DNA of 64,000 nt from Chara braunii (Eukaryota; Plantae; Charophyceae): the NCBI GenBank assembly GCA_003427395.1, contig BFEA01000020.1:5482410-5546409 (forward strand). The letters run 5' to 3'. The stretch's first letter is position 1; each line of letters begins with the position of its first letter. Made by a program: the position numbers and the translations under genes. Below, piece by piece: positions 26,935 through 64,000 of the stretch. The notes beneath the pieces are model-generated. The model was given only the letters and a program-made list of their open reading frames with translations, was not told the DNA's origin and ran no database searches.

Positions 26935-29900
26935 CTTTTTTTAATTAAAAAACAACCCCGGGATCAGCTTGAGGCGCTGGTAGGAGCAGACACATCAAGC
27001 TTCCGCGGAGGAGGCTCCATCTATTGGTGGGGAGCTCCACCTGCTGGAAAACGAGCCCAGCGTCCCTTTATACAACTGTACATTGAAAAACAGGGACCGG
27101 TTGAAACACGTGGGGGGATCGCCTCTTCAGTCTGTCGGCAGACCGCCATTAATATTCAATGAGACGCTAGCTACTCCCCACCTTTATTCACTGTATGTTG
27201 GTTGATGTCGAGGGTGGCCACATTCATCCTCCTCCCTTTGTAATCTAATCCCTAAACCCTAAGCCCTTGGTACTTGATTGCTTCATCGCCGAACCCTCTC
27301 ATTTTGTAGGCTGTGACAGACACGACTTTGACTGTACATATCAGCATACCACCCCTGCTTGTATCCCGCCTCCCTCTTTTGAAGTCTGAACCCCTAAGCC
27401 CTCGAAAAGCAGAGCGCTGAACCCTGTGCGCACACAGACTTCATTGCGGCAAATCTGAGACGTTGCCCCTCCATTCTGTGAACCTTTTGTTCTGATGTGG
27501 CAGAACCATTGATCTGTAAGTCGCCTGGGTCTGCACAGTGTTCTGCCATTCCTTCGTATGCATGGTCCTACGTATGCTTCGATTGTATCTTTGATACTGT
27601 CCGTGGCTGCCCTCCGATGTCGTCATTGGTTGTTACTGAACGAGTCCACAGTCCCCAGACTTGTAGTTGCTCCCCTTCCGTTTCTGCCACCCTTCGCGCG
27701 TCGTTGTTTCCTGCACATACTTTTCCGTCCCGTGTGCGGGTTGGGAGCGTGGATCTATGGGGCAGGCATGGGGCTGGGAGGTTGAGAGTGCAGGGGGGGG
27801 GGGACAGTGAGTGAGAGGGGGTAGGTTGCCACAAGGATGAAGTTAGTCGGAAGGTATGGGACCTGATATTCAGTAAGAGGCTTTCGTTGCCTCGTGCCCT
27901 CTGAGTTTCTCCACCAACTCCACAGAATGTCCAGACTCGCATCCAGTTCACTGAACTTCCTATGGGGATCTTGCCAAATTTGAATCATCATCATCATCAT
28001 CATCATCATCACATCATTAGTATCATCATCTGATTATTGTTATATTAAGCTTTTGGGTGTTCTGAAATTCTGGCTGCATCTAGTATTCTTCCACATTCGG
28101 GATATAGAGAGATCTGGGGTTTGCTGAGGGTGGAAGGCATTCCAGTGGTGAACCGGGGGGGACTACAAGGAGGCGAGAAGAGATCAACTATGGTTGATGT
28201 TGGTTAGGTTGGTTTTGTCTCTGAGGCACAATGTCCTGGCACAGGGAGGGCTAGGAGTTGTACTGGGATTAGGAGGCCAGAATAGCTGATATAGCATAAT
28301 CTTATATATTTTTTCATATATTTGAATTATCATTCTCATTAGCATCATTATCTATGGTATCATCAGTATCATCATGGTNATCATCATAACCATTTGAGGG
28401 ACGCTGAGCCCGGTTCTCAGCAGTTTTGGTTCGATCACTCCGGGCAGACTATGAGGACCCCGGCCTCAATCTTATTATTGGTAATATCAGCCTCGGGCAC
28501 CGGGCCCGGTTTCAAAAAAAAAAAGAAAAAAANAAAAAAAGAAAAAAAAAAGAGGAGTCGTGGATGGCCTGTTTGGCCTGAGGTTCATTCGTATTGCAGT
28601 ATTCGTTTGTCATATATTTGTTTCCACGCTTCCCAGGTGCGGGCAGGTGCGGGATCTGATCACCTCCTCTATTGCATGCCGGGCTTGCTACAGGCCGAAC
28701 TGGTGGTCTTTCCTTTCAAAGGAGCACCTTGCACGCCAGGCCAGCATCGGATGTGCAACCGTGTGTATGAGAATAGGTTAGCTGCGAAGGGAGACCAGTG
28801 GGCTGGCAAGTGTTGATTCTTACGAGCAAAAGGAGGCCCAGATCCCATGGGACGTGGAATGTCGTCAATGAGTGAAAGGCGGCGTCCCACCATCGCCACA
28901 GCTGGGCAACCATCGGGCACGCTAGGAGACAGTGTTCGATCGTTGCTCTGGTGGGTGGCGACGCTCTCCGGCAGTGAGAGCAAATGGGGGACAACTGGCC
29001 TTTCTGCTCCAAGTCTGTTCTTGACACCAACCAGTCCGGTGTGGGAAGGCATTGGTGTAGGATTTGCCACTGCAGCGACCGGAGGTTTGTGGGCATAATC
29101 TTAGCGTATGTAGACCATGACAGGTTGCGCAGCAAGGCCAGTTCTATAGGTGAGTCCCGGGCCCATTGGTCAACTATGATCTGCGTGGTGGGTACATCCG
29201 GGCATGAGGCTCTGTAACCACCCTTCACAGAGTAGTCCCAGACATGCATCGGTTTCTCCCCAGGCCATTCCCAATCCTCCGGGTCAAAGGGCAAAACCAC
29301 AATCGATGTGGAGGGTTCATAGACGAAGAGACCGTCTTTCGGATCCCCCATCACTCGTACGAGCATCAGGTCGGTCCAGATGTGGTCGCAGTCAAGGTCA
29401 ACGTTGCGTGTGAGCTTGGACATTCTTGCCCCCGGATGCTGGGGTTCATGGGCTTCGAGAATGCAGGTCCCCGGGTCGTGTTTGTGCACTCTGTAGATTA
29501 CATGTGGCAGGGGTAGATCATAATATTTGACCACCTAGTCTCCCTGTACGATGGTTGGCCCTTTCTTCAGGGTCAGTTGCCAGGCCAGCGGTGCGGCTTC
29601 CTTTAGGATGTGCAACTTATCCTCCACTTTTTGGATGTACTTTATGCATTTTTGGAGCCGGGTTGCGGTTATCCAGTTCCCTTTGCGAACGTCCCAGAGA
29701 CTTCCTATTGTATATATCCCTTTTTTTCCCCAGGAGAGCCATGGGGAGTTTGTTGTCAGCGGGAAGGGATTACCTGTGTCATCCGCAATGTGGGGGTTCA
29801 AGTTACCAAATAAACGTTGCCTCCATATATTGTGCCACCTATCAGGAGGACTTTTTTTTTCGGTCCCACTTGTCTCCAAAGTTTGATCATGTTCGACCAC

Positions 29901-33074: not shown

Positions 33075-34900
33075 GAGACGCTGAACCCAGTCTCCAGAAG
33101 GTGCTGCTCCCCACCAATAGACTGGAGCCATCCACTCCACAAAGCCTCAATCCCAAGGGTTAACTCACCACCCTAGGCAAAGTGGAAAAACAAGAACACA
33201 TTTATTTTTGGGAGGGCGCTGATTATTAACAGAGTGGTGTTGGCAGCTATCCGGTATAAGTCTGCCCTCTGACACCTGGGTAAAAGTAGTGCCAGGGTCT
33301 TTAAAAAACAATTAGTAGTTTTCCTTTGGAGGGGGGGCTCAGACCAACAACACATGATTAACTGAGTGGTTTGTGACACGTTGATTCAAGCCAAAAAACA
33401 AGGGAGGAGTGGGATTGTTGGACCCTTCCCTTCAAGCTACGGCATATCAATCCAATGGGTAAAAAGATTGATCTTGGGCATAACCCCCCCATGGTGGAAC
33501 CTGCCCAGCGAACAAATCTGTAGGCTGGCCCCGCCCGAAGAGTAGACCCGCTTAATTGGATTGATGACCGTTATTGGTCCATTCCCTAAGCCAACTCACA
33601 TTCACGAAAGGAAGGTGATAGAGGAGCAGCAAGACAAGATCTAGCAAGGGAAAAATTTTGGGTAAACCTCATCAAGAATTGGAGAAGGTTGTCGATCCCC
33701 GACAAGCCCCCCCAAGAACGGATAGAAGAGGTCTTGCGCCAACCCCTATTAGGGAACAGAGCCATTACAGTTAGACAAGGTTGGGTACTCGGCAGCTCGG
33801 ACCCTCAATGGACCGCATTGGTTAGAGATTAGATTCTCCGGGTAGAGGACATATAGGACGAGGCAACCAAAGATTGGGAAACTGCTAAAAAACTAAAACC
33901 TTGTCTACGACACGCCCGCAACCTGATAGACAGGCTAGGACAACTGATATTATCGATACCCTTAGCCTAGGTGGTAATCCTGAGAAAAGGACTGTCCTTG
34001 CAGGAACAAGATTGGGTAGTAGTCGGGGCAGAGGACCTACCCCTACAAATAGGGTGCATGGTGGAGGCAAGATCTGAAGGGGCTATGATTAATCTATTTG
34101 AAAGAAAAGGGGATAACACTCTGGTTAGGTACCGCCCAAACTCGGTCCAACGGCGCGAGAATGCCAACCTATATCAGATTCGGGTGCTGCAGATTAACAA
34201 GGGAGGAAAGACAGAATGACGAGTTTATCGCTTGAAAGTTCCCCTGTCCAGTTTAACCCTGGATCGGCTCGAATGGCAATGAGAGCAGGGCCGAACCGGG
34301 CGAAAAGTAAAACTCACTGGACTGACGGTAAAAAACACTTAGAGGATGATTAGGCCCAGGGTAGATGTGCAGGCATGAGTAAGGGATGGGTGGAAGAGAC
34401 ACTTTAACCTGGATGATGATCAGATAAGAGGAATTAAGTGGTTCAAAGGGGTGAAGGAGAGACCGACGAAATTTGCCTCCTTGCAGTGGCAAATCACTCA
34501 TAGATGCCTCCCCACCAACAACTGGTTCAATGATAGAACAAACCATAATCAGAAAGGGGAGACGCTTCCATGGTGTACATTCTGCTATGCGGGATTCCCG
34601 AGCCGTAAAATATGTGAAACAATATGACATATTATCCTCCAGCGCCCAGAGGTGGTACTAATGTGGCATTGGTGGGACCGCATTTGGTCACTACTGGGTA
34701 CTGAGGAGAAGTGGTCATGGAAATGGGAAGCAATCCTGCTAGGTGAATGAGAAAGACCGCAAGCATCCAGCTTCGCCAACAGTCTGTTTTCCATGGCCAG
34801 GAAGGCGGTGGTCTGGATGTTGTGGACAAGATGATGTGTATTTGATCAGGAAGGGGCCAAAATGGGGGAAAGGGAAGCGAAGCAAATAGTCTGATTCCGA
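33075..34900 (+). mobile_element. Truncated LINE tail (33075-33177) directly followed by a highly degenerate LINE ORF2 C-terminal half
   Basis: Tail motif GAGACGCTGAACCCAGTCTCCAG..GCTCCCCACCAATAG, then GRALIINRVVLAAI.YK, FWVNLIKNWRRL.IPDK, SLQWQITHRCLP in mixed frames. Confidence 0.8.
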
Positions 34901-36699: not shown

Positions 36700-39600
36700 A
36701 CCGGGAGCAATGCGCCATGCAATGCTTAAACGCATCGGTCCAACCCCCTATGCTCGTCCTGGAGCGTCAGTCACCAATTGTAATATGGGAGGTTTCCCAG
36801 GGAGTCTGCTTGGAAAGCAGAGGCAGCAAGCACCACAGACATCAGATTCAGGAAGGAAGGTGGTGAACAATGCATGGGGAGACACCCCGTCTGTGGTCAC
36901 CAGCACATTGCACCACACAGAGGAGAGGGGGGCAACACTTCACACACTCTCAACAACAGACCCCCCGCAGGATCTCATGGAATTCCCCCCCATGCAACCT
37001 GCCACTGCTACAAAACAGGATGACCCGACTGGAGAAATGCAGCAGAAGGGAGAGATCTGATAATGCGATAAGGAAATGAAGAGAGTGAACTTCAAGAGGA
37101 AATTCTGACAGGAGATGAAAGAATGCAGGAAAAATCCCAACCCTCACAATCATCTCATAATAAAATTGGAACTGCAAAAGGTACTTCCCAGACTGCTAAC
37201 CAGGTTACTAATCAGCCGTCATGGGCACAAAAGGTGAGGGAATCCCTGCAAAATAAACACTGAACATACAACGCCCATTGATTGATCCGGTTGGTTCCCC
37301 AGCTGAAGAATTGAAGATTTCTCTTAGGAATCTCTCATCATTCAGGACTTACTTCCTGTCTCTCTTCCTTCTCCCCTCAGAACAACTGGTCATCGTGCAA
37401 GCGGCCTACATATCAGTTAATGACAAAATTAAGTTTATTTGCAAGAGGTTGGAATCCTTGAGGGATGGGTCAGAAGGGGTAACAAAATTCTTCCTAATCC
37501 AACCAATCACTCCTACAGTTTTCACAGTTCTGAGTCTTTTTGACAAAGACAAATTTTGCATGGGTGCTTAGAAGAAAATGCACTGGGACCGGTCAGAAGT
37601 CAGAATTTACCAGTGGTTTCCCAAAAAGGTAGGCCTAGAAGAGAAGAGGGAGCAGATGATGAAGGACTCCTACTGGGTAGAGTTCAGACATATCCCAGTC
37701 GAAGTCCAAACAACTTTCATTCATGGCTTCGGTCAGCTATTCAAAATTGTTGACTTCATCAATCCACTGCCTTCTTACGTCGTCAAGAGGGACGACAACT
37801 TAATGATGGCTCGGGACCTCCCCAAAGAGCAACTCTTCTCACTGGACGATATTATTCCCTTCAAAATGGAAGGCAGGGTGTACCAGATTCACACAACGCT
37901 TAAATTCCGACCTTGGTGCTTCAAATGCATGGCCTATGGTCACCTCCACACCGACTATGCCTGCCAACAACACCCCCAACACGCGATCCCCCCAGACATG
38001 CGACTCAAGAGGGATCCACAAAGACCCAACAGATGGGTCCCAGCAGTCTCCGGATACGAGGGGTGGGTCTATTGTGAAGACTTAAACCAGGTGGGGCAGC
38101 CAGTTGGCTGGACGTGGGAAGGGAGAAGTGACTTCCATAAATCTCCCCGTCCCCTAGCAGACTGACCCCCCCCTCAATCCCCTCCTCCCCTCGCGCAGGG
38201 GCAGTCCTAGCAGTCTCATCCCTCACCTTAAGCCTCTCTCCAGCCCGGGAAACCTGCACACATTGACCCGAATAGACAGGGTCAGACATCATCATCTAAA
38301 CCACAGACAGGCCGCATGAAGAAAGGTGAACTGCAACAACCACAGGGCACTAGTGCTGGTGAGAATGCCGATAAGCTGGTTATTAATGAAGGGGGGTTCA
38401 AGGAAAATCAAAAGCACAAGGGAATGGTTACTCCCCCATCTGGCAGTTGAAAAGATCTCTGGGCCCAAGGGCAATGGACTACCTGCCAAAAAGTGGAACA
38501 GGCCCAGAATGGCGCAAAGTAAAAAGAAAAGGAACAACAAAGCCAAAAGAAAACCAGGTTGACACACCAGGACAAACCATGGGTGTGGCAAAGGGTAAGG
38601 AGAGGGAGGAAGGGCAAGGGCGGGGGGAGGAACACGGTGAACCTGATGCAGCGGTGGAGGTAATTCCCATAGAAGTCAAGCCTTTTAGGGACGCCTTCGG
38701 CCCGGAACCAATGAACGTTGAACTATTCTTGCCCTGTGCTCCCCCCCTCGCTGTGTTTGTCAAACCCTGACATTACTGCAGACGTGGAAACAATCGTTCT
38801 TCAAATAGCTGATTGGTTATTGTGTAATCTAAAAGTTCAGCACCCAAGCCTACCCAATGATTCTTGGCCCCAAATCCTCAAGGAATTGATGTTGTTGTTA
38901 GAGAATAGTAAAAGCCTTGGTACCTTTTTACTACAAGGTTCCCCGCTGGGTGTGACATGGAATGACATCAATGCCAAACTCCTCTCGATCGTTTCCTCTA
39001 GGTTCAACCATTCGACCCAAGGAGAAATCCCCCACTTGCCTAGCCTTTACAATCATTTTCAACCATTGGCCTTGCTAGGAAACGAAGCAGAAATTTCAGA
39101 AACCTCATAACAGTCAGGCAATGGGACCTCCCCCCCTGTGAATATCCCTGAGGAAGGAACTCAACCATGTAGGGGGAAGGTTAGTGGCCCATTGCAGGAA
39201 CCTCCTCAAAATTCACGAAATGCGCAGTCTCATCAGGAGGAGGCCCGGGAAAACGATCAGAAAAATGAGCCCCGGAAATTTTCAACTGCTGATACTAAGT
39301 TTCCTAATTAGGTGTCACCTGCTAATATAGGAATCAATTTATTGGATGTCCAGTCCAACGCCCCAACCAATGCAATGGATCCTCAATTGGCAGAACCAGA
39401 AGCCCAGGGAGAGGAGTTTGACCCTCTCAATCAGGCTTTCAATGAGGTCATTTATGAACTTACTAGGGAAAGGAATTTTTGCAGATTCCCAACAACCTAC
39501 GCCCTGCGGTCGCTAGCAAATATAGTCAGGGCCTGATAGAATGAGACCCTGGTTCATACAACCCGCAAGTACAACAAAGACCACATGGAAACCAGATGGT

Positions 39601-40750: not shown

Positions 40751-40882
40751 CTGGCCTGTTCAACCTCTAATTCACTCCCCCAATAGTAGTCAGTGGTGTC
40801 TGCCCTGCTTGTAATGGAGAATTTTCAGAAAATTGACACACTATACAACAAGGACAAAACATGGATATCCCTCAAGAGGCAA

Positions 40883-43800
40883 GCTGATTTAGACTTTAGA
40901 TCCCTGAACGTTAATGCCTTGCCTCCGCCAAGTTTCAAAAGAAGCAAGTCATCTACAACTTAGGGGAATAAGGGGAAAATAATGGTCTGACGTCATTTGT
41001 ATCCAAGAAACGCACCTCATGGATACTGCCATCCACAATCATTACCATAAACAGATATGGCTCTATACAACATTCAAAGCACATGCACCTTGTCCTGAGA
41101 GTGCCGGTGTTGCAATTTGGATTCCTACAGATTCCAATGTAAAACCAGTTTACTGGGAGGTTGACAAAGAAGAAGGAAGGTGAGCATACATACTGGTAAT
41201 GTTGGAGCTAGAAATTGTCATTATCTTATGTGTCTATGGGTCAAAAGACGTAGGTAATCTTCAACCGTTCTTTGAATCTCTGATCCCCAAACTTCCAATT
41301 GGCATCCCAGTGATCATAGCAGGAAATTTTAACACTGCTCCAGATCGATCTTGGATCGCTAGCGTATTCCTACCATCTGCCCGACCTATGTGGAGACTGA
41401 TGAAGTAATGATTGTCAATCTAACTCAATCATTTCACCTGTTTGACTCATTCAGAAGATTGAACCCTACCCACCGTACCTTCTCGTGCTTTAGAAAGCAT
41501 CGGGATAGGATGGTCACTAAGTCGCGTATTGACCTAATTCTCCTCTCTGACAAATTGGAAGGTTCTCTTCAAGTTGCTGAAGTATTCCTAGAAGCTCCCT
41601 GTTAGGACTTGGTCACGCTATGTGTGTGGTTATTCTCTCCTTCAGGAAAAAAAACAGACCAAGGTAAGGGTTACTACAAATTAAACACATCTCACCTTTA
41701 AATTGAAAGATTTAGAGCCCACCTAAAGGATGTCTGATATTTTTGAAGACAGAAAAAAATCATTATCCAGGATGATATTATGTGGTTCAACAATGGTCTA
41801 GCTTCCCGAGGCTGTAAATGCAATGAATATTCAAAACTATTGGCAACCGAACGTCGTTCCAATGAAGCAAGGATTTATCAGCGCTTCCAACAGTTACAAT
41901 CCCAAGAAAGTGAAAATGAGAACGAGGAAAACAATCAACTGGTAGCTCAAGAAATTCAAGAACTAGAAAACCAATTTCTCTCACAAATGAAATATCGTTG
42001 GAATGACCTTCGAATTAGAGGTAAACTTTGAAAGTTTGTCACCGAGGGGGGAATGAATGCATGATTATTTACCATGGTCAGAGCCCGAGTGAGGAGGACA
42101 GTCGTTGAGACTCTGGCTTATCCCCAACATCAAATTGATGAGTCGGCCACCTCTACGGATGAATGTACTAGGATTATGAAAAAAAATTTCAAGAACCTCT
42201 TCTTATCAGAAACTGGTATCATCCCCCTTAACCAGTGTAATATGAAGATAGATGAATTTCTGAAACCTATGTCAAAGTCCCTCTCTGCATCCCAAAGAGA
42301 TCAATTGGATTTGCCCCTAACAAAAGAATAAGTATAGACTGCCCTAATGCTCATGGAGGAGGAAAAAAAAACAGGCATTGCTGGACTACCTAAGGAATTT
42401 TTAGAATATATTTGGGACTTCATCTCTCAGGACTTAATGGACTTTTGTCAGACTGTTTGGGTGACTGGACAGATGAGAGAGTTTGTGGGGCAAGGTATAC
42501 TGACACTGCTCTATAAAAACGACGATAAATGCAATATTTGTAATTATCGGCCCATCATACTCCTCACTATCGTTTATAAACTCATCTCAAAAGTCCTAAC
42601 GAATCGCTTAAATAAATGCATAGCCGACATAATCCACCCCTCCCAAACAAGTTTTATCCAAGGAAGGAATATCCAAGACAATACTCTTCTGATAAATGAG
42701 TTCGTCAAACTCTCTCGTCAACCTAAGCACAACGAGACCATTATATTAATAGATTTCGAAAAAACATATGATCACGTCGACTGTTTTTTTCTGGATAAAT
42801 GCCTAGAGAAACTTAATTTGGATCCAAACTTTAAACGATGGATTAAAATATTGCATAATAACGCAACAACAAGAAAAATGGTTAATGAGAATATGACTCC
42901 CCCTACAGCTCTACACAGATATGTGAGGCAATATGACCCAATTGCGTCACTCCTTTTCGTAATAATAATGGAAGCCCTGAATGATAACCTCCGACAACAG
43001 AAAGATATTAAGCGCATCAAAGTGTCATCCATCCTAGAGGAAACAATCCCTGTTTGCTCCCTGTTTGCTGATGACCTCTCTCTGATGGTTGATGCGTCTT
43101 AAGAGAAACTAGAAGCAATCAAAAGAATCATGGATGAATTTTGCAAACTCTCAGATATGAAGGTAAATTGGGGGAATAAAATGCTGGGATGGTGGATTCA
43201 TTACCAAGGAGTAGGGATTTCAAAACGACCACTGATCAAATGGCTTCTTCCTAAAACACCTATCAGAGTCATAGGGATCTCTCTCTCAACACTTGACCCT
43301 TATCTAACAATGTTGGGATTTTACAACAAGCACATTCAAAATTGGAGCTATAGAGGGACAAACATACCTTGTTACTGGGCAGGACGTTAGTCATTAACAA
43401 TGTGGTATTGGCCTCAATCTGGTATAAATCACTGATCTGACCCTTGAACAAAACAACCATTAAGGTTTTTCAACGACAATTTATTGTCTTCCTCTGGCGA
43501 GAAAATCACGAATGTGAAAATGCCATTAGTAGGGTGACATGACTTTCTATAATCCAGCCCAAAGCCAAAGGTGGCCTAGGCATCATAGACCTCGCTACCC
43601 ATATTATGACCCTGTCCATTCAACGGTTAAAACGCCTCTTATTCAATCCCAGACCTCTTGGAGTAAACTGACAGGTGAGCAAATCAGAAGACTAGCTCCA
43701 CCCATTTCAGAGGACGTGGATCCACTCATGTGGTTGGAAAAATGCTCTTGGTTGCTTCCGAGGAGCACCACATTAGAACCCCATCACCTGGAACTACTCG

Positions 43801-45261
43801 ACCGACAAGCAGCTAGAAGAGATATTGTCAGGGACCCATTTTGGATCAACTTGATTAAAAATTGGAGGAAATTGCCTCTCCCAGACAAGATAGCTCCTGA
43901 GAGATGGGAAGAGGTCTGCCAACAACCATTGTTTAACAATACATTTCTTAGAGATTCTCAAGGGTGCACCCTCAACTGTTCGGACTCACCATGGAAAGGA
44001 TGGATTAAGAAAGGAGTCACACGCATTAGAGACGTCTGAAACATTGAGAACAGGGACTGGATTGATCTATTGACCCTCCAGGAGAGATTAAGATATTGCC
44101 ATCATCAAAAGGAAACTCTAGAACAACTAATTGATATAATTCCCCTAGACTGGGTCAGATTCCTGATAAATGGACCGAAGCTTATCCCAAATGACTGGGT
44201 ATCCATCATCGATCAACAAGGGATAGTGGAAAATGTAACTGAAGTCCGCAACACAAGGGATATTCTTATATCTATCTTTGATCTAGGGGAGGATGGTTTC
44301 ATCAAGGCAAGATCACAAGAGCACACGGGGTGGGTCAAAGCAAATAGAGTTTTTAGGATCAGGGTCCTTATGATTAAGGAAAGTTGGTTTGCTTTTAAAC
44401 GAGACACACCCATCTCTCATTTCCTTTTATATCCGGTCTGTTGGATCTGGTCCTCCTCAAATGGTACAGGGCGCTCTTACGTAAGGACACTTCACACCCT
44501 GTCAGTGAAGTCTACCTATAGGATGCTTCGTCCTAAGATAAACCTCTATTAAGTGATTCCACTCTATTAAATTCAGGCCAGCTAAAGTGGCGTCGTTGCA
44601 ATGACAAATTGCCAATTGCTGTCTCCCTACAAACGACTGGATCATCGATAGAACATCGTTGGAACGAAAAGGAATAGCCCTTCCGTGGTGTAAGTTCTGC
44701 AAATCAACCTTCCCATCTAAACTCATACAGGAAACTTTAGAACACATTTTCTTGCAATGCCCAGGCTCAATTTGGCTATGGCGGTTGTGGGATAGGATTT
44801 GGAGCAAGTTAGGAACATCCCTCCCTTGGCCCTGGAATCGGAAGACCCTCCTCATGGAATCCTGGAATCCGAACCAGGAAGATGCTTTCACTCTGAACCT
44901 ATTCACAATCGGAAGGCGAGCGGTCATGTGGGCAATCTGGTTACGAAGGTGTACTCATGAAATGGAAGGTGCTCGCCTAGATGGCCCTAAATTCACTGAT
45001 ACTATCAGACAACAGATTCAAACAGAGATCACTATCAAATGGGGGTCCCTTAAGGAAAAATTACAATTTTTATCATTAGATAAAGAAATATTGCATCATA
45101 TAAAAACATTCAATCGGAACTGGCTTGGAGGGGACCAGGGAGGGAGATTGGGACGGGTGAAGTGGGAAGGAACAAAAGAGAACGGCCAAGAGGAGATCCC
45201 AAGGAACTACAGTCTGACCTTCAATGACTGGAGCAACGTTGATCCTACTGCACCTTTATGA
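40883..45261 (+). pseudogene. LINE ORF2 (APE endonuclease, RT, zf-RVT) with many stops and frameshifts
   Basis: ADLDFRSLNVN, CIQETHL, AGNFN, SRIDLIL, NYRPIILL, IDFEKTYD, RQYDP, FADD, CKFC..ETLEHIFLQCP. Confidence 0.93.
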
Positions 45262-45901
45262 CCTCTGTCGGATTTCCCTGATCCCTTCCCTCTCTCGAAC
45301 CTTTGCTTAGTTCCCAGGTCGTGGTATGCGTAGGAATGATCTGGAAAATCCCTTGCATTGTCTGTGAATGTTGGGGTCAGCCTTTCTCAAGAACAAGTGT
45401 GATTAAGTGCTAGGAAGATACGTATATCTGACGCCCTCTCAGGGTGAAGAGGCACAAGAGTCAACACTCAGTTGCAGATTTCCCACTGACACTGATCAGT
45501 GTCGAAGTGTATGTTCTTTTGGGGGATGGGCAGGGAGACGGAAGGAGTACCCACTGGTGCCCCCCAGTGGCTCCTCCTTGAACCCTGACCGGGCACAGGG
45601 TCGGAGAGGGAGATGGGGACCACCAGCTTTCAGTTCCACGGTTCGGGTCATGTTCACACCTGCTCTGTTAATCCTCTGGATTCCAGAGCAATCAATGCTG
45701 GCAGGCACCCTCAAGACACCATCCAATTTTCCGTCAATGTCTCATACTGTATCAAACTGTGTAAGGGACTCTGGACCCGTTTTCCAGCAGGTGATGCTCC
45801 CCACCAATAGATGGAGCCTCTCCCCAGGTGCTAGCGATGTCTGCTCTAAACAGCATCGCTAGCACTGGAGGGACTGTTAAAAAAAAAAAAAAAAAAAAAA
45901 A

Positions 45902-47184
45902 GGGACGCTGGGCCCGGTTCCCAGTTTGTGTTGTACCTCGGTCCTTCATTGTTTCTCATGGGACGCTGGACCCGGTTTCGAGAAGGTGCAGCTCCCCACC
46001 AATAGAATGGAGCCCCGATAAGTCTGGTAGGAGTGCATGCTCGTATCATCACTCCTACCTGACGCCACAGGATTTGTTAAAAAAAAAAAAAAAAAAAAGA
46101 GTGCGATGGAAAAAAGTTGAGGAAAAGATGGCACATCTGACACAGAAAACAGATATCACTAAAGAAATCAGTACCTTCTGCGCAGATTGGCTAGGGGGGG
46201 AAAGGGGAGGCAGGATGACACATATAGATTGGCCCCGGGAAAGAGGGAACGAAGGGAGAGGCAATGCACTCGACAACGACTACAAACTCAAGTTTCACGA
46301 ATGGCTTCAGGTCAATCCCGATATTCCAATGAAGAGTCCAGGGGAGTTTCCAGACATTCCCCCACGACAGCCACAACGATCGTAGAAATGCAATGGTTCG
46401 GGCGAGAGTCAGGAAAGAGCAAAGGCAATGTAGAAACCCCCCCACCTGCTCAACTAACAACGAAAATGCTTGTCAGCCACGTATAGTAAATGTTCTGCTT
46501 AAAGGGCACTAGAGTAGCATGCCTGATCATGTGCCCTTCAGTTTGTTGAAGAGGTACCCTCTAAGCAGCAGTCATCACAGTATTTCAGGCTCATCAATAA
46601 ACAAGCTCAAACAAGCTCAATGTAATGGGACGCTGGACCCGTTTTCCAGCAGGTGAAGCTCCCCACCAATAGATGGAGCCTCCCTGGGAATGCTAGAGGG
46701 GTCTGCTCTTATAAGCTCCCCTAGCATCAACCTGGGAAACATACATCATGGGTTTTGGGAGGGAGGGGACAGGGGATGGCGGAAGCCACCCCACATCAAC
46801 TCCATACATACACAATACACCTCACACTGTCATAGCACTGCACAATACATCATGGGTTTTGGGAGGGAGGGGACAGGGGGTGGTGGAAGCCACCCCACAT
46901 CAGTTCCACACTTACACAATACACCTCAAACTCTCACAGCACTGCACAAGGCAGCACCCCGGGCAATATGAAGTTGGACAGCAACTAGGGTCTAAGGGTT
47001 TATCTTATCAGATACGGCTATAATAATATGTCCATCCATACAAACAACCACAATGTTCAGGAACCCTGGACCCGGTTTCCAGCAGGTGCTGCTCCCCACC
47101 AATAGATGGCGCCTCCCCGATAGTGCTAGTGGTGGCTGCTCTTACCAGCATCCCTAACATCTGTTCAGGTTGTTCCCCCCCCCC
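45902..47184 (+). mobile_element. Head-to-tail stack of short LINE 3'-end units
   Basis: Motif starts at 45902, 45960, 46627 and 47060. Poly-A at 46079-46098. ORF2 C-terminal remnant (VRWKKV..WLGGERGGR) at 46099-46385. Confidence 0.75.
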
Positions 47185-47727
47185 NNNNNNNNNNNNNNNN
47201 NNNNNNNNNNNNNNNNNNNNNNNNNNNNNNNNNNNNNNNNNNNNNNNNNNNNNNNNNNNNNNNNNNNNNNNNNNNNNNNNNNNNNNNNNNNNNNNNNNNN
47301 NNNNNNNNNNNNNNNNNNNNNNNNNNNNNNNNNNNNNNNNNNNNNNNNNNNNNNNNNNNNNNNNNNNNNNNNNNNNNNNNNNNNNNNNNNNNNNNNNNNN
47401 NNNNNNNNNGTTCTAGTGGAATATTCATTCTCATTTTGTACATTTGGTGAGTGGTGTGGCGAGGCTCGATCCATGCTAGGGGGACCTTTTTTTTCAGGTA
47501 AACATGGGGGTTACTGCTGATGGGGTTGGTACCTTGCCCCTGTTCAAGGGTGAGACACGTAAATGGGAACATCATCCGAAAAAAAAATTATTAAAGAAAA
47601 AAAACTCAGGGTTTACTCACACTAGGGCTATGTTAAATGCATCTGACCACATTTAAGACCCAACCTGGATGTATCCAACCACAATTAGGTCCAGGAATAA
47701 GTGAAAAGGTGTTAGTGCGAGTATGCC

Positions 47728-47900
47728 CTTTTTTTTTTTTTTTGAAAAAAACTCTGCAGGTAATACTAGTTGAGGTGATACGAGCATCCTCAACTAGCAT
47801 ACCTTGTGCATGTCACTCCATCTATTGGTGGGGAGCTACACCTGCTGGAAACCAGGTCCAGCGTCCCATTAGATACAATTTCACAAATTGGTAACTGAGC
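47728..47900 (-). mobile_element. LINE 3'-end unit, minus strand
   Basis: Motif at 47815-47867, hairpin with CTCGTAT loop (47778-47784), poly-T at 47728-47743. Confidence 0.75.
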
Positions 47901-48096
47901 ACTGAGCCTCTTCTCCCAAACATAGGAGCGAGATGATCTTAAAACCATCATCCAGGTCAAGATTGACAACAAGGAGGCGACAGGGGGTAATCGCCTCGCC
48001 TGTCCCTACCCTCAGAATTGCACACTCTCTAAATTTCTCCTCCCTCACCTCTCTCCTCCCTCGCCTCTCTCCTCCCTCCCTCTTCCCCCCCTCCTC

Positions 48097-48241: not shown

Positions 48242-51200
48242 ATGATGCCACCCTCCCGCCCTCCTCCCTCCTCACAGACTGAGGGAGGGAATAAAAACGA
48301 AACACAGATTCCCTCCACCACACAGGGAAAACATCGGGACGCTACCGCAAGCGCCACCCGCCATCACCCCTCATCGCACCATACAATGCTGGGGGAGAAA
48401 AGCGCGAAGGGGAAGAGCGCAGACGACGACAACACAAGGGGGCAGGATAAGGCAAGTGGCAAACACGATCTGACGACGCAGTCAACTGTGCACAAAGGCA
48501 AAGCGGGTGAAATCGCTGAAATGGCCATGATGCCACCCCCCCGCCCTCCTCCCTCCTTACAGGTTGAGGGAGAGAATAAACACGAAGCACAGATCCCCTC
48601 CACCACACAGGGAAAACATAGGGACGCTACCGCAAGCACCGCCCGCCATCACCCCTCATCGCACCATACAATGCTGGGGGAGAAAAGCGTGAAGGGGAAG
48701 AGCGCAGATGACGACAACACAAGGGGGCAAGATAAGGCAAGTGGCAAGCACGATCTGACGACGCAGTCAACTGTGCAGAATGGCAAAGCGGAGGAAGGTC
48801 AGTATCGTAAAGTCCCTCCGCACAACAGTGCGGACCAGAGGGGCCACACAATGCAACCCTCCCGGAGCACAACATGGGCGGCGGTGGTCAAGGGAGGACC
48901 AAACAGAGATCCAAGTGGTAGCCAGGGCGCCCCCCCGCACAATGGTGCTGACCACAGGGACCACACGGTGCAACCCTCCAGAAGCAGAACATGGGCGGCG
49001 GTGATTAAGGAAGGACTGAACACGGATCCGTGCGGAAGCATCCCAGCACAACCAGGGGGCACCTCTCTCAACTCTGCGCTCATATCTGACACCAATCCCC
49101 CCTTGGGGCTGGATTCAATGCATCCGCTCAGATTCCACTTCGTCCAGAAACTGCACAGGAAAGCGGCAAGGAAAGTCCAAATAAGAAACAATACATTGTG
49201 CCCCGTTTCAATCATCTCCCCTCAAGCTCTGGCTGTGAGGAACCAGGTGTATGATGAGCACGCCGTCCAGTTCATCTTCCCGCAGGTTGCGCTGGCCGCC
49301 CTCCTCAACGACAGACTCAAATGGGTCTTCTGAATCCCCCGCTCCCAAAAGATGTCAGCAGCAGATGCAGCAGACCACTTTCTGGTGGAGTCCTCGGGGG
49401 TTTCCACGGTTACTGTTTCGAATCCTATTGACAAAAAAAACCTCCTTCGCCTGCGCAACCCGACTTTCAAGGGAGCGCAGGTGCGGATCCAACAATGGAG
49501 ACCGGACAAGCCGCTCTCTCCGGACGAGAGACGACTTCAGCTCATGGCAAATCACTACTGGGTGGAGTTTAGCTTTGCACCGGTCCACATTCAGGGAGAG
49601 ATCCTTAAACTGATAGAACAAATTGCGCCTATCAAAGGATTCATAAATGGTCTCCCCCACTTTCTGGCGAAGAGAGATGACACCCTGCTGATTGCAGTCG
49701 ATTGGCACCCGGAGGAAAAATTCCCCCTTGTGGATGAATGGCACTATCATGCTGAAGGGAAGATGTACATAGTCCCCCTCAGTCACCCTCAGAACCCTTG
49801 GTGCCACGTTTGCAAATGTAGAGGACACCTCTACACTGACGATCTCTGCCCGGCCAACCACAGGAACCTTCCAAGAGGATTGGTCACCCAACACCCCTCG
49901 GAAGACTGTACTTGGCTCCCGGATGACAAGCTGCTCAAAGGATGGATATTTAAGACAGACTCCGGGAAAATAACAGGCAAATGGGAGTGGGAGGGAGAAA
50001 GCCCTCCTCAACACTGTCCGGAAGGATGGAAACACCCGTCGCAAGAGCGCCCCCCTGCGAAGGACCCCATCCGGAACCGTCAACAGAAGCATAACTCGCC
50101 CACGCCCACCATTACACCGGGAAATACTTCAAAAACACAGGGCGGTCAAACACCTGTGCCAGGTCATAACCATACATGTATTGGGACGACGGGAGAGCTG
50201 CCTAAACACAGACCTGACCCGACTGGAGCACTGATCGACAGACCTGCAGTGAAGGTGCACCCCGCCCTGTCGAAAGAAGCAGATCCCCTCATGGCTGCCA
50301 ACAGAATCCGATCCGAGGAACACCGATCTCAACACCCAAATGGGGGACAAGACCGTGGAAAGAACCTGACAGTAGAGAGAACAAAGGAAGTCATCCTCAT
50401 TGAGGATAATGACACAGACGAGGAAGGCCCCCCTTTGCTTCCCCGTCGGAGGACCGCTGGTCCGACAACAGCTGCTCAACAAACACGAACATCTGCCCAG
50501 GGTCGAAATATGTCCCCCTTACAAATTACACTCTCCCAAAATCTTTCTGAAGGATACCCGGGGCCTGCGAAGTGGAGACAGAAAAACAAAGATCTCCCAA
50601 AAACCCGTGGCGCCACAGCTAAACAAGGAAATCAACAGTTGGCCGACAAAACTGAGGGAGCGACGGGGATGCCTGGATCCACCCCTCTGCCAGAAGCAGA
50701 GGAGAGGGAGAAATCCAAGCCACACACTGTCGCAGTTGTCCCTCTGCAGATCGGAAGGGAGGGGGAGAACTCCAAGCCAATCGCAACCACACAAACTCCA
50801 CATGGTCATAGCCCTGAAAGCTATCCAGGAGCCATCAATGCTGCTGCGAAAAGTGATACTCCACACAGGCTAGGCCCAAAGAATCTTTCTGGGGTCATCA
50901 TTGTCGCTGCGGGGTCGAACAACAGGGAACCCTCCCCAGGAACGGTCCTATCGCTGGGGAGGGAGAACTCCAAGCCAAAACCAGCTACAACAACTCCACA
51001 CAACAACAACCCCGAGATCTGTTCTGGAGCTATCATTGCTGCAACGAAAATTGACACCCCACACAACCATGGCCCTGCAAACCATTCCGGAGTCAGTATT
51101 GGCCCCGAGGGGACGAACAACCAGGAGTCCTCCCCAGGAATCGACCAAGTACCTTCAGACACACGGCTCCTCATTCCCATAACCGACGCCCGGCAGCGTG

Positions 51201-53883
51201 ATCTGGACCCGGTTGTAAATATATCGCCAGACATACTGGTATACACACACGGCTCACACAAACCGGGAATGGATGACAAGCTTCCCTCGGACAGCACCGC
51301 CCAAATTCCCATCCACCCCTCTCCGCCTCGGATCCTTCAACCCCCTCCATCACCCGACAAGAAAGAAGAGCCCACGGGTCTAGAGAAGGTAAAAGTCAAA
51401 GTGAAAGGACTGGTGAAGGCAATGGCCCGGTATGGGAAGATAGAGAATGCATCTTCAAGAATCAGAGCCCTAATGCAGGGCGGGGAAAACACCGTGGAAG
51501 AAGATCAACAGAGGCTCGACCTGCAACCCTCACCTCTGAATCAGATCGCAGTGGGCCTCCCAACAAAGGGGATAACGGTGACGGACCAAAGAACACAGCT
51601 TCATCCGACCACGGTGTCACCCCCCTCCCTCCCTGCTCGAACAGGAGAAGTACCCAACCAAACCGGTGTCTCCCACTTCAAAGAGATTATCTCGGAGCTG
51701 ACTGGGGAGACAAAATTCCTCTTTCACGCTCCAAGGGGGCCTCCTTCTCAAAAGACACGAAGGAGTGCCCTCATACATGAGGAAATCGACGACCGGCAAG
51801 AAACGACAGAAGAAGCCTCCCCTAACAAACTAATGACTCAGCAGCAAATTACACAGGTGAGGGACGAAGAACTGAGTCCACTGACAAACTTAGACAACAG
51901 AACAGGGCTGGTTTCCTCTTGTGACCTCAAGGACCTTCCGATCACGGATGTATCGGTCACCATGGGGGAACAATACCTGCAACCCACAGGAGGGGAGATG
52001 ACGATGGCTCAACCAGGCCTAGCCACGGAAGATCCCCGACCCCAACCACTGCAGAGTGAACAATCCCAGGGGGATCAACATCAACCCTGGACCTCAACCA
52101 CCCCCTACTGGACCAGAGCGCCGTGGAAATGGAAACGGGGTCGCAACAAGTTGTGGACCACGAAAACCGCTCGTTCATTCCCCACAGTATGAAAGTGGAC
52201 ATTGTGCCCTCTGCTGATCCTGCCCCGTCACCTCCCGTGCTCCCTCAACACCAGGGCCCGCTGCTACAATGGGCAGCGCAAATCCAACAGTCAGTGGGAA
52301 TTTCCCCCCAGGGCTACGAGCTAACTGAGACAATGTCCCTGGCACAGCAACTATCTATGCAAGGGTACAGAATGTGGCAGGCACAGGTAAGGAAAACCTG
52401 TGCATGGCTCTACACAGGTCAATCCCTCCACGAGATCTTGGGTCTCAAAACCCAAATCCCCATGCCCTACCAACAGCCGGGGGGACAGCCACAGGCTGAA
52501 CTTCCATTAACACAAAGCAACCATGAGTCTGTCAGCCTATAGTTATCGGCCCCCATGGAGATTGCAACCATCCAAACGGAGCGTGTGCTGCTCATACAAG
52601 GGAATGAAGTGAAGTCCATTTACGAACAACGACACATGGAAGTGGAACCCCCCCCTGCCCATCCTCCTGAAGGGGACCGCCTCTCTCAGATAAAGAAAGT
52701 AAAACGCAGACTCAAGAAAATAGCGGACTGGGCTCTACAGGACTACTTGAAACACACTACGATCCAAATGGCTAAAACCCTCCCGGAACATTACCGGGTG
52801 ACTATAGCCAACTTGGTGGCTACCTGCCCTCCAATGGTTGAGATGGTGGATGCCTTCCCATCCCTGAACGAGATCGACTGGGCCCATATAGCCCACCTCA
52901 CCGAAGGAGTGGTGGACAAAGTCATCCGCAGCAGCCTCTTCAAAATAGGGCCGGAAGAGCCTGCTGCAGACGAAATAAACAACCATGAAAGGGGGGTAGG
53001 AGAAGACAAACCTGCTCCTGCCTCCCTCACAGTTGCCCCCCACCATCACCCTAGGAGGACCCCCTCGCCTCACCTCCTCTCCCTCATCCCCCCTTCCAAT
53101 ATTCGCTCAGACGAACAAGGCGCGATCGGACGGGCTTTGCAGGTCACCCACCCGGGACAGACAGGACAAGGACAGAACTACGCTGTAGCAATTGACCTCC
53201 TTTCATCCTCAGAGGAAGAGGAGGGGGGAGATAACTCGGAGGAGGAACAGGAGGAGGAGGAGCAGGAGGCGGAGCACGAGGCGGCGAACAACAAGCTTAT
53301 AAGCACCGACAAAACACCCAGGCTGTATGGCCACTCTGAGGGCGGACGAGAAACAAAAACTACCACAAGGGGCAAAATGAAAGACTGGTTAGACATACGA
53401 GAATACTGGGATCTCGCGAATTTGAGAGAAACAACTCTACTTATCATAGCCAGTCAAGACCAGCACACCAACCATCCGCGCATTGGTCTCCTAAAAATGG
53501 AACCACAATATCTTAAGCTGCCAACGGGTCTTTCTCTTCGAGGTTGGAGAAGAAATCTGGACTGTCAGCAGGTGGCTGCTCTCCTGCAACCGCTGCACGA
53601 CATGCGGGCCGAAGACATCGCAAAATGTCTCCTCGCTTTAAACACCCTCCCCTTCCCGCCACAGATACACGTCGTCCGTTGGTACATTACACCTCGACAA
53701 GCCCAAGCCAACAAAACCTTACAAGATCAGTTGGAATGGCTCACGGAGGAAGATTTGCAGCAGATGCCAATAACAAGGTTCAAAACCAGTCAGGTGTGGC
53801 TGGCATACCACATCCGACATATCATCGGGGTGATTCTCACACACGGGCTCATGTCTGTAATGTTGCAGGGACACGGTTACTAG
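48242..53883 (+). pseudogene. LINE ORF1 region (~5.6 kb; in-frame stops at 49331 and 52540, frameshift near 52100)
   Basis: ORFs 48242 and 49352 share a frame, as do 52123 and 52555. TWAAVVK motifs, knuckle PWCHVCKCRGHLYTDDLC, long low-complexity linker. Confidence 0.8.
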
Positions 53884-53919: not shown

Positions 53920-54383
53920 ATGGATTCCAGGTTGCCCACACAAGACAACCAACATCCTCAAATACTTGTCATGATAAACCAGGCCATAACCTCGACCCCA
54001 CCCTCACGCTCGCCCCCACCCCTTCCCCCTTCTCCCCCTCGTGCCCCACCGCTGCCAGCGTTTCACCCCAGACCCGTGCCCCCCCCCGTGCCGCTGGTAC
54101 CCCCCAGACTGAGGAAGCCCCCACAATGGGAAAAAGACCTGATGAAGGCCGACCTTGAGATCCGATCAATAAACGTGAATGGGTTAGCAACCACGACCAA
54201 TCAAAAACGAGCGGCAATCTGGAACATGATACGAACATCCGAACCCCACTATTGGCCAGACGCAATCTGTGTGCAGGAGACACACCTCATGGACACCTCT
54301 CCACACGCTGCGAAAGCAACAGAGGTGTGGCCTTACGCCGCCTTCAATGCATTCATGTCCAATTTTCATTCCGCAGGTGTCGC
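53920..54383 (+). pseudogene. LINE ORF2 endonuclease, N-terminal part
   Basis: ADLEIRSINVNGL, DAICVQETHL, SAGVA. Confidence 0.9.
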
Positions 54384-55438
54384 TGTCGAGCGCATCGGTC
54401 CGGCACCGCATCAGGGCAGCGCGAGACCCTCCCGGACGCATCACGCAGGAGTTGGTTTAGATCCTTCGTCGCGAATATACATGGAGCTTCCGCAAGCCGC
54501 TCCGGCCGAGTGCGCCAGCCATACCTCTTGCGAGCCCCTACGACAGGATAGGGCCTACGCGAGGCACGACTTACCTCCACGTTACGGGAGCTGTCACCTC
54601 CCTTCGGTGGGCGTATCCCCGCCGAGCTACCAGTCCACAGTACGAAAGTTAATCAGCTGCAATCGTAGAGGTGGTCCAGCCGAGGGCGTTTCTCGTTCGC
54701 TGTAGCATAGGGGGTACGCGCGGTAATACGTCTCTATCGGACCCGCACGCGAACCTCCATCTTGGGGGGCTGAAGTCCCAAGCGCGGCCTGTCGTCGGTC
54801 GACTAGGACGTATCCCACACACCACGCGCACACCACTTTATGAACACAAAAATAAAACACACACACACACACGAAACAACACTGCATAAACAACGCGACA
54901 ACGCTCCTAGCCCCTCAGTAGCCAACCCATAACGTTCCGGTGCGGGAAACAAATAAGCGTCGTGCGCGAGACTTAGTATAAAACCGCGTGGACGCAGGGC
55001 CTACTCATATCGACTCGCAATGCAGGCGTACGCAAGCAGTCGCAATGATGGCGTACTATGTAGTGTCCATAATCAAGCGGTCCCTCGTGGATTCGAGTAC
55101 TGCTTATGACACTCAAGTGTCAGACTCGAAGTGTCGTGAGGGTGTAATCCTTCACGACATTGCACGGCTGAAGGAATAGCCGTGTAGCCGCCGCGAGACC
55201 TCCGGCCTTTGGTCTGAGCGTCTCGGTAGGCAAGGCAAATAGACTCCGCACGAGGGATGTCCTGGACAAGGACCTCGAATCCCGGCACAGGACCAACGTC
55301 CGACTAAGAAAATTATCAAGAAGAACAAGCAAAAATAAAACGAGGAGGATATCCCTAGGCCTCTTAGTCTTACCTTCTGAGTATCCTCTTTTGTACGGGG
55401 CCCCTTAACCCATGCAGGCATTCACCCTATGTACACCC

Positions 55439-62097: not shown

Positions 62098-63618
62098 TCG
62101 CAATCTGGCTTCCCCCCACATCGAGGTTAAAACCCCTATCAGTCGTGGTTGACAAATCTCAGGGGAGGTGGGTATATCTCAAAGCCAGTATGGGGGACGA
62201 AGTAGGCCTAGCCTGCATCTATGCCCCGAACTCAACAGCAGAAAGAGCAAACTTCTTTCTAGATCTTATGCGCAATATTCCCACTGACGTCCCCCTCATA
62301 CTGGCGGGGTACTTCAGAAGGAGTCCTTCCCAGACTGATAGCCAGGCACAAACCCAACCTCATTTCGGGCTGGATGCCCTCGTCTTCAACCAAGTGATGG
62401 CTGAATTCCAACTGCTGGACTCACTCCACCCGAGCAAGCAAAGTTTCTTCTGCACAAGATCAAGGGGGGACGAAGGTCTCTCTAATTCTAGGATCGACCT
62501 CATTCTAATCTCCAAGGACCTCGTCGGACCGCTTCGGGTGGCGGCGATTTTTCCCGTCTCCCCATGTCGGTCCTTTGACCACAAGATGACCGCCATAGGC
62601 CTGAACCTACACCCAGCCTTCCCGAGAGGACCGAGCTTTTTTAAGTTCAACACCTCCCTGCTCAAACTGCCCTCCTTCCACAAGTGTGTCAAGGAATTTT
62701 GGGAATACTGGGTTACTAGGAAAACTGAATTTCATTCATTGGTGGACTGGTTCAATCAAGGAGTGGGACAGTTAAGAGAAAGAGTCAGAAAATTTTCAGT
62801 CAAAAGGGTCAGGGAAAGAAAAGCGATCCTTGAAGACCTCCTGCAAACTCTACAGCAATGGGACGATCAACTTTCCTCCCACCCGCTCGACAACCATGTC
62901 TATGCTCAATTACAACAAGCAAGAGACAGACTCCAAGAATACTTGGACGACCAGGCCGAAGCGTGGAGAGTCCAAGCAAAGATCAAGCGGATACACACTG
63001 AGGGCACAATGACCAAAGTTTTTTTTGCAAAGGCCAAGACCAAAGGCAGGCAAGCGACCATTAATTCCCTCACCCACCCTCTTGACAAGAACCAGCCCCG
63101 AGCCACGAATCCTTACGCAGTCGTGGATTACGCTGCTAAATATTATCGGGATCTGTTTACTTCGAGAACGACCCGGAGAGGGGAGGAAGACCTCCACACC
63201 GCCAGACAGCAACTGTTAGATAACTTGCAAACCACACTCTCTCAGGCCCAGAAGGAAGGGATGGACGCTCCCCTGACCTCCTTTGAAATATTCACGGCCC
63301 TCCAACAGATGGAGGACGAGAAAACACCCGGCCTGGATTCGTTTCCTAAAGAAATTTGGATAGCGACATGGCCTTTGCTAGGCACCAACCTAATGGAGTA
63401 CATAAACGCAGTCCTCACAGAGGGTACGTTTGGAGGTCTTCTCAATCAAGGGGTCACTACATTGCTATACAAGAAAGGAGCAAAAGACGAAATCAGGAAC
63501 TACAGGCCGATAACGCTGTTGCCGGTGCCTTATAAAATGGTAGCAAAAACATTGACAAATCGAATGCTACCTAACATGAAACACCTCATACACCCAGATC
63601 AGTCCGGATTCATTCCGG
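62098..63618 (+). pseudogene. LINE ORF2 continuation (EN C-terminal half and RT N-terminus)
   Basis: GRWV, IYAPN, SRIDLIL, DHKM, GPSFFKFNTSLL, KTPGLD, NYRPITLL, HPDQSGFIP. Confidence 0.93.
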
Positions 63619-64000
63619 TGTCAGGCGGCCACAAGTAGTGCGCCGCCTGAAAACGGCAGTTTAGGGGTTTAGGCTCAGGGTTAAGTCCGCGTCTTGACAG
63701 TGCTTTGGGATGACCGGGCTGCAGGAATTTGAGAACTCAGGGTACCCCTGATTCTGGGCGCACTAGATTTTAAGAGTGACCCCCAAAGATAGCGAGATGG
63801 ATGGGTGTACTGAGCACAACTAGAGACCGTCATTTCCGGTCGCTCAGAGGACTGGGACCGTTTTGGCCTGCCGCGGAGAGGGATCGCGGAAACAGACCTC
63901 GCCGCGGCATTTTGACGGCATACAACCGGGGCCGAAATGAGGCCTCGGATTTTTGTCTATTATAATATCATAATTAAAAATAAAAGAAAAAGATTAAGAC
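63619..64000. mobile_element. Start of another TGTC-ended insertion running out of the window
   Basis: RT homology stops abruptly after GFIP at CCGG|TGTCAGGCGGCC. Terminal hairpin TCAGGCGGC..GCCGCCTGA. Confidence 0.65.

Follow-up and report, generated by a model that had tools for sequence, protein, structure and literature searches.

A stretch of 64,000 nt of the Chara braunii genome (hereafter the window) contains seven copies of an RNA hairpin located at the 3' ends of decayed LINEs, which sequence comparisons support placing in the L1 clade. The hairpin is a real, conserved RNA fold that combines a variable helix, a single unpaired base on the 5' side and a nearly constant heptaloop. We consider it, at a probability of roughly 55%, to be a stringent-type 3' recognition hairpin that would be read by the ORF2 protein (ORF2p) together with the poly(A).

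The terminal hairpin and its copies

The hairpin that was initially flagged is the last structured element in the tail of a LINE that we designate LINE-E. The features of this tail are as follows.

45765-45818, plus strand: 54-nt upstream module, a GGGAC hairpin and a CCACCAAUAGA hairpin, which recurs in the window
45828-45865, plus strand: core of the flagged hairpin (type A), a 12-bp helix without mismatch, then a bulge, 3 bp and a heptaloop
45828-45839, plus strand: 5' arm of the flagged hairpin
45840, plus strand: bulged U
45841-45843, plus strand: CUG
45844-45850, plus strand: loop (CTCTAAA)
45851-45853, plus strand: CAG
45854-45865, plus strand: 3' arm
45866-45901, plus strand: 13-nt spacer with a CUGUU end (45874-45878), then a 23-nt poly(A) (45879-45901)

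An outer helix lengthens the flagged hairpin to approximately 45821-45873, its minimum free energy is -33.1 kcal/mol (z = -5.1 relative to dinucleotide shuffles), and 28 nt separate the end of the loop from the poly(A). The upstream module has a mean pairwise identity of 0.87 across 10 copies and lies 5' of the terminal hairpin in most type-A copies; it is absent upstream of the copy with its loop at 15824. The sequence AAUAGA is invariant in the loop of the module. We also observed a TGTA(A/T)-like motif 5' of the module and U-rich runs at the poly(A) junctions (45757-45764, 45874-45879 and 46074-46079 on the plus strand, and 47745-47743 on the minus strand).

The type-A architecture occurs seven times in the window. 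As we define it, a helix of about 12 bp is followed by a single unpaired 5'-side base, three pairs (CUG/CAG) and a heptaloop of the form CUCNUAY. All of the hairpin positions quoted in the original prediction were confirmed: the plus-strand loops begin at 45844, 46040, 46706, 47139 and 15824, and the minus-strand loops at 47784 and 26986. The copies other than the flagged one are listed below, together with two from public contigs that we refer to as L001 and L002.

46024-46061, plus strand: type-A hairpin, loop CTCGTAT at 46040-46046, bulged C, poly(A) at 46079-46098, z -4.9; part of a 197-bp unit (45902-46098)
46690-46727, plus strand: type-A hairpin, loop CTCTTAT at 46706-46712, closing CAG mutated to AAG, poly(A) lost; ends the truncated LINE-F
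47123-47160, plus strand: type-A hairpin, loop CTCTTAC at 47139-47145, stem decayed; continues into an assembly gap at 47185
47763-47800, minus strand: type-A hairpin, loop CTCGTAT at 47784-47778, bulge 2 bp under the loop, 15-nt poly(A) with its end near 47729, z -5.7
26965-27002, minus strand: type-A hairpin, loop CTCCTAC at 26986-26980, small internal loop in place of the single bulge, z -3.6; ends LINE-C
15808-15845, plus strand: type-A hairpin, loop CTCGTAC at 15824-15830, bulged U, poly(A) at 15868-15877; without the 54-nt module
L001:428-494 and L002:9-75, both minus strand: two external type-A copies in public contigs (BFBZ01...)

Both contigs were retrieved by one metagenome scan with the upstream-module pattern, and a scan of viral contigs retrieved none. 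Orientation and position relative to the poly(A) are constant in all copies, and in the six copies that have kept a poly(A) the loop ends 28-37 nt before it, in agreement with the predicted pre-poly(A) location. Searching the window and the contigs with a covariance model (R1), filters off, returned no copy beyond these nine, which scored 52-69 bits; everything else scored at most 21 bits, the next-best matches being the reverse strands of the same hairpins. Weak matches of the covariance model at 21767, 52977, 24885 and 18784 are generic hairpins and were rejected, as were other CTGCTCNTAYCAG-like sites (29354, 52588, 11679 and others), which are not hairpins at tails.

Structure, covariation and loop enrichment

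To compare the copies we used a gapless alignment anchored on the loop (alignment A2), which comprises the seven window copies and those of L001 and L002 (n = 9). Given no hint, RNAalifold recovered from A2 a fold of 12 bp, a 1-nt bulge on the 5' side, 3 bp and a 7-nt loop, and single-sequence minimum free energy folds had the same shape in six copies (z from -2.3 to -5.7). Paired cells amounted to 88.1% in the alignment compared to 71.2% in shuffles, and in none of 500 shuffles was pairing or covariation as high as in the real alignment. Pairing fell to 27-56% once the 3' partner was displaced by 1-3 columns, and changes on both sides of the helix (double compensatory changes) were found in nine of the 15 pairs. 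The loop is also enriched within this architecture: the two strands of the window contain 64 CTCNTAY sites, six of which have at least 13 of the 15 pairs in the exact arrangement. Across positions in general, such pairing has a frequency of about 5e-4, a background that includes AT repeats and the copies themselves.

Conservation is highest at the apex. The invariant columns of A2 are G26, U29, G30, C31, U32, C33, A36, A39 and C41, and the conserved core can be written as G-N(bulge)-CUG-[CUCNUAY]-CAG-C. A fixed CTCNTAY loop had been predicted, and this holds in eight of the nine copies; the exception is the flagged copy itself, the loop of which (CTCTAAA) differs at two positions. This deviation can be explained by decay after insertion, since the loop of the nearest relative, in L002, is CTCTTAT and the element that carries the flagged copy has decayed heavily. 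The single 5'-side bulge near the loop is kept as had been proposed, with column 27 unpaired in all nine copies (column 28 in one copy), and the identity of the bulged base varies (U in five copies, G in three and C in one; in the copy at 47784 the adjacent A may be the unpaired one).

Pairwise identity is 0.89 in the apex, 0.59 in the lower stem, 0.44 in the mid stem and 0.34-0.39 in the flanks. The lower stems had been described as fully replaced between copies yet still paired. The pairing is indeed maintained, at 88.1%, but full replacement overstates the case, given that a UGCUAG/CUAGCA stem base is common to five or six copies and identity in the lower stem reaches 0.59. The pair G26-C41 is invariant and G21-C46 nearly so, free variation is found mainly in a window of 4-5 bp between the semi-conserved stem base and the conserved apex, and the stems are quite different in three or four copies (15824, 26986, 46040 and L001). 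Between the flagged copy and that of L002, which belong to one subfamily and have similar flanks, two stem pairs have changed on both sides (C-G to U-A and A-U to G-C). Stem variation of this kind is explained by neutral drift under a pairing constraint, so that no special hypermutation is needed. The variable stems appeared to share 6-9-mers with coding sequence close by (near 46100-46125), but this is at chance level for 8-9-mers in 128 kb and was discarded.

Wobble pairs in A2 carry no strand signal (7 G.U compared to 9 A.C), and the RNA strand was instead assigned from the side on which the poly(A) lies, the asymmetry of the loop and bulge, and the model scores. Looking by eye for loop-to-module kissing or a pseudoknot, we saw no complementarity that the different loop variants have in common.

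These results bear directly on the reading that the hairpins have no function and are chance palindromes or a by-product of copying. There are only nine copies, all of which sit in decayed elements, as this reading would allow, yet the covariation, the slid and shuffled controls, the enrichment of the loop in this architecture, the asymmetry of the conserved loop and bulge, and the constant placement relative to the poly(A) together make it scarcely credible.

ENE-type elements carry a U-rich internal loop on both strands of their stem, and an ENE-type poly(A) clamp was ruled out here, since the Chara hairpin has a single unpaired base only and no U-rich internal loops. The iron-responsive element and the MS2 operator, for their part, combine a free helix with a fixed loop and an unpaired 5' base set a few pairs below it. 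The Chara hairpin resembles these two in form only, the sequences and proteins being unrelated.

LINEs that carry the hairpin

Decayed LINEs in the window were mapped by tblastn with the window's own LINE ORFs, which delimited the following elements and parts.

40880-45261, plus strand: LINE-E, decayed L1-clade body that owns the flagged tail, followed by a 3' UTR of about 500 nt
~40880-41600, plus strand: endonuclease remnant of LINE-E
42347-43102, plus strand: reverse transcriptase (RT) of LINE-E
44659-45261, plus strand: CCHC-type Cys/His C-terminus of LINE-E
46119-46385, plus strand: ORF2 C-terminus of LINE-F, a truncated element with its tail at 46690-46727
30100-28649, minus strand: ORF2 C-terminus of LINE-C, with its tail at 26965-27002
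18851-18249, minus strand: ORF2 C-terminus of LINE-B, which has a tail of type C (see below)

The RT ORF at 42347-43102 matches the Pfam family RVT_1 (1.5e-21), and its best relative among solved structures in the PDB is human LINE-1 ORF2p (2e-23), ahead of R2 (4e-13). The zf-RVT family was found in two other ORF2 C-termini, and matches of the LINE endonuclease pieces to Exo_endo_phos are weak. Taken with the poly(A), the RT and zf-RVT matches bear out the proposed L1-like family and support the assignment of the carriers to the L1 clade. With the RT and C-terminal ORFs as queries, word-based protein searches brought up no Chara braunii relatives, ten ORFs of the window and one of L002 had no match in exact look-ups, and the Logan contig L003 ends within ORF2.

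Type-A hairpins terminate LINE-C, LINE-E, LINE-F and the elements in L001 and L002, and they also terminate short or truncated units at 45960, 47060, 47867 (minus strand) and 15824. In LINE-E, LINE-F, L001 and L002 the ORF2 C-terminus lies 240-500 nt upstream of the tail. The ORF2 C-termini of type-A carriers are 26-48% identical, and the 500 nt upstream of each tail have no shared nucleotide similarity between carriers. Set against such diverged C-termini and 3' UTRs that cannot be aligned, the 87-89% identity of the module and apex indicates purifying selection, as judged from these comparisons.

Tandem duplications of about 105-146 bp are present in LINE 3' UTRs, 5' of the tails, at 12502-12837 and 46741-46949 (both plus strand). 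Further along the window, a 946-aa open frame without a Pfam match extends over 49352-52192 (plus strand), and its N-terminal section at 49475-50002 is 35% identical to an ORF1-like ORF at 37578-38165. This open frame is probably the ORF1 of a downstream LINE, the endonuclease of which lies at 53920-54705 and the RT at 62145-63638.

Other tail types and candidate riders

Tails of two other types were found alongside those of type A, as well as one short unit that ends in a type-A tail.

13029-13172, 33075-33190 and L001:272-405, all plus strand: type B tail, with the 54-nt module as in type A and a different terminal hairpin
17815-17700 and 18033-17900, both minus strand: type C tail, a GGGAC hairpin directly followed by A6-7 and then a conserved G-rich stretch
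45902-46098, plus strand: 197-bp unit, single copy, which begins exactly at the GGGAC hairpin inside the LINE-E poly(A) and ends with the module, a type-A hairpin and A20

The apex of type B reads CGGU[U-NNN-UCACC]ACCG, and type B tails have no UGUU-type run before the poly(A). The sequence CTCTCAC near 13115, which had been listed as a variant of the type-A loop, turned out to belong to this apex, other members of which are CATTCAC and AACTCAC. The type C copy at 18033 lies about 200 nt past the ORF2 C-terminus of LINE-B. Tail type and ORF2 C-terminal similarity do not go together among these few elements: LINE-C (type A) is nearest to LINE-A (type B) at 48%, with the caveat that a body-to-tail distance of 1.1-1.6 kb makes the tail assignment of both less sure, and LINE-E (type A) is nearest to LINE-B (type C) at 44%.

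The 197-bp unit may be a SINE-like rider, or it may have arisen by extreme 5' truncation. It and the module-less copy at 15824 are the candidates for a SINE partner, both being indistinguishable from extreme 5' truncation, and no definite SINE partner was found within the window, nor were tRNA-like heads found on the candidate riders there. A 13-nt sequence put forward as a target site duplication of the element at 13212-15878 is A-rich, low-complexity DNA and was set aside as unreliable.

Several other features were recorded in these regions. An insert at 28398-28551 (plus strand), in opposite orientation within the 3' region of LINE-C, consists of a GGGAC hairpin, a long poly(A) with interruptions and, between the two, unrelated sequence of about 90 nt. 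A full-length U6 snRNA match (Rfam RF00026, 80.9 bits) with a T-run end lies at 14094-14196 (plus strand), between the tails at 13029 and 15824, and the pol of a chromovirus-type LTR retrotransposon is found at 5952-9391 (plus strand; Pfam RVT_1, Integrase_H2C2/rve and Chromo).

Candidate readers of the tail

The decoupling of tail type from the ORF2 C-terminus fits module exchange or a shared host reader no less well than it fits recognition by ORF2p. With a host reader, the tail would signal to host factors that act in the formation of RNA 3' ends, in export or in stability, which we regard as unlikely. The same apex and module are present on L1 lineages with ORF2 C-termini that are about 30% identical, and this is what a host signal would lead one to expect, as is the decoupling of tail type. 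A U-rich run with a pyrimidine as its last base stands before every poly(A), so that the junction reads YA; AAUAAA is absent from the last 40 nt and AAUAGA is invariant in the module; and TGTA-like motifs often occur just 5' of the module, all of which is compatible with 3'-end formation. On this explanation the element must supply its own polyadenylation signals, which the structured tail could present or bring near the cleavage site, and the TGTA(A/T) motif, the U-rich run and AAUAGA could together constitute plant-type signals of this kind. However, a single host reader predicts uniformity, and tails of types B and C with other terminal hairpins coexist in the genome; moreover, a hairpin that merely provides spacing needs no fixed loop and bulge.

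A related proposal is that the tail is a portable cassette, the apex (which looks like an anticodon loop) and module of which would be recognised by a cellular RNA-binding or 3'-end-processing factor and not by the element's protein. Such a cassette would account for the apex shared at about 30% ORF2 identity, and for hairpin types that seem to have been swapped between related lineages, and we nevertheless judge it quite improbable on the present comparisons.

Within the element itself, the ORF1 protein offers another candidate, as a zinc-knuckle type RNA binder that would bind the hairpin in place of ORF2p, for packaging or for cis preference. The ORF1-like frame that lies 5' of LINE-E (37578-38165) contains a Cys/His motif and has the 35% identical relative at 49475-50002 noted above, and nucleic-acid chaperones typically target hairpins with conserved loops. 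Yet zinc-knuckle proteins usually prefer an exposed G, and the loop motif is without G, while no Pfam domain was detected in the ORF1 pieces. Published binding to LINE tails maps to ORF2 (PMC4176376), and we consider the ORF1 protein a decidedly doubtful reader.

It is also conceivable, if very improbable, that the hairpin mimics an anticodon arm with CNU anticodons and thereby recruits a host tRNA-binding protein. The anticodon loop of tRNA has the layout Y32-U33-NNN-R37, with 7 nt on a 5-bp stem. The loop C-U-C-N-U-A-Y fits this layout in its second base (U) and its sixth (A), but the seventh is a pyrimidine and not the usual A, and the stem consists of 3 bp and a bulge instead of 5 bp. The middle base is free (G, U or C), which disfavours a specific synthetase, and neither ARAGORN nor Rfam identified anything tRNA-like.

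Recognition by ORF2p is the reading that we favour. The hairpins occupy the same position and orientation, they covary, and the apex is far more similar between copies (0.89) than the mid stem (0.44) or the flanks (0.34-0.39). The loop is enriched within hairpins of this architecture, and the covariance model scores the poly(A) strand only. The carriers are L1-like and deeply diverged, with C-termini 26-48% identical, and double-sided stem changes are seen even within one subfamily, between 45844 and L002. Precedents exist, moreover, in the L1 tails of plants and green algae (PMC3472496, PMC3747384) and in the zebrafish L2 element (PMC4176376). We counted against recognition by ORF2p the small number of copies, all of them decayed, such that no active source element is known, as well as the off-consensus loop of the flagged copy, the failure of tail type to follow the similarity of ORF2 C-termini, and the lack of a definite SINE partner in the window.

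Under this model, ORF2p would bind the hairpin on its own transcript. The neighbouring poly(A) would be annealed to the nicked, T-rich target, and there ORF2p would begin target-primed reverse transcription. Template choice would be stringent and poly(A) would be required, as in SART1 and the proposed ancestral plant L1. From the pattern of conservation we infer that the apex and bulge form a putative protein-recognition site and that the stem would give generic helix contacts. The conservation of apex and bulge across diverged lineages matches the published pattern of stringent-type LINE tails (PMC3472496, PMC4176376).

Comparison with known LINE tails

Tails of comparable organisation have been described in both land plants and chlorophytes. 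In a monocot L1 lineage a hairpin occupies the last ~45-50 nt, with compensatory changes in its stem and a few conserved bases in the loop and flank (Ohshima 2012; PMC3472496, PMC3747384), and the tail hairpin of this type in monocot 1a / LINE1-1_ZM is common to maize and sorghum SINEs, including ZmSINE2/3 (PMC3472496). In Chlamydomonas, L1-1_CR and SINEX-3_CR have a common tail of ~80 nt with a poly(A) end (PMC3472496). On the evidence of one monocot lineage and one Chlamydomonas element, Ohshima proposed that the ancestral green-plant L1 was stringent and required poly(A), and that land-plant and mammalian L1 became relaxed independently (PMC3472496). The silkworm element SART1 of the R1 clade, as summarised in the same work, combines stringent 3' UTR recognition with a required poly(A) (PMC3472496). 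In zebrafish L2, the region of ORF2 between the endonuclease and the RT binds the cognate hairpin, for which the stem is generic and the loop specific (PMC4176376).

The Chara hairpin appears, on sequence grounds, to belong to this known class of stringent LINE tails, in a form that we did not find described and that is not the maize motif. Rfam 15 gave no match to the tail at gathering score across the whole window, nor at E<=1 within 45700-48000, and we found no description in the literature of L1 tails from Chara or other streptophyte algae. Like LINE1-1_ZM, the Chara elements are plant-lineage L1s with a terminal hairpin, a variable but compensated stem, conserved loop bases and a tail that is more conserved than the body. 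LINE1-1_ZM differs, going by its published description, in having a UCU loop and a CGAG 3' flank, whereas the Chara hairpin has CUCNUAY, a 5' bulge and CUG/CAG; none of the nine Chara copies has CGAG 3' of the stem, and UCU occurs in the loop only if N is U. In addition, LINE1-1_ZM has a demonstrated SINE partner, whereas the Chara hairpin is known from LINE tails and ambiguous short units.

L1-1_CR, compared here by its text description, is likewise an L1 of the green lineage with a specific tail and a poly(A), although Chlamydomonas is a chlorophyte and Chara a streptophyte alga. The eel UnaL2 and zebrafish ZfL2 elements also end in a stem-loop, and the reading of these by ORF2, as presented in PMC4176376 and in Nomura 2006 as cited there, is the model for the mechanism that we propose. 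These belong to the L2 clade, end in short repeats and not in poly(A), and have loops of other sequence and size, and binding is proven for them and predicted here. SART1, as far as it is summarised in PMC3472496, is similar in that stringent 3' UTR recognition goes together with a required poly(A), and it differs in belonging to the R1 clade, in being telomere-specific and in its RNA motifs.

A covarying, loop-specific tail, shared in a streptophyte alga by many divergent L1 lineages, would bridge the monocot and Chlamydomonas points. At ~40 nt, the hairpin is also a compact RNA for assays of binding and mobility. In a genome so rich in repeats, moreover, the apex motif is a useful marker by which L1 3' ends and their non-autonomous riders can be annotated.
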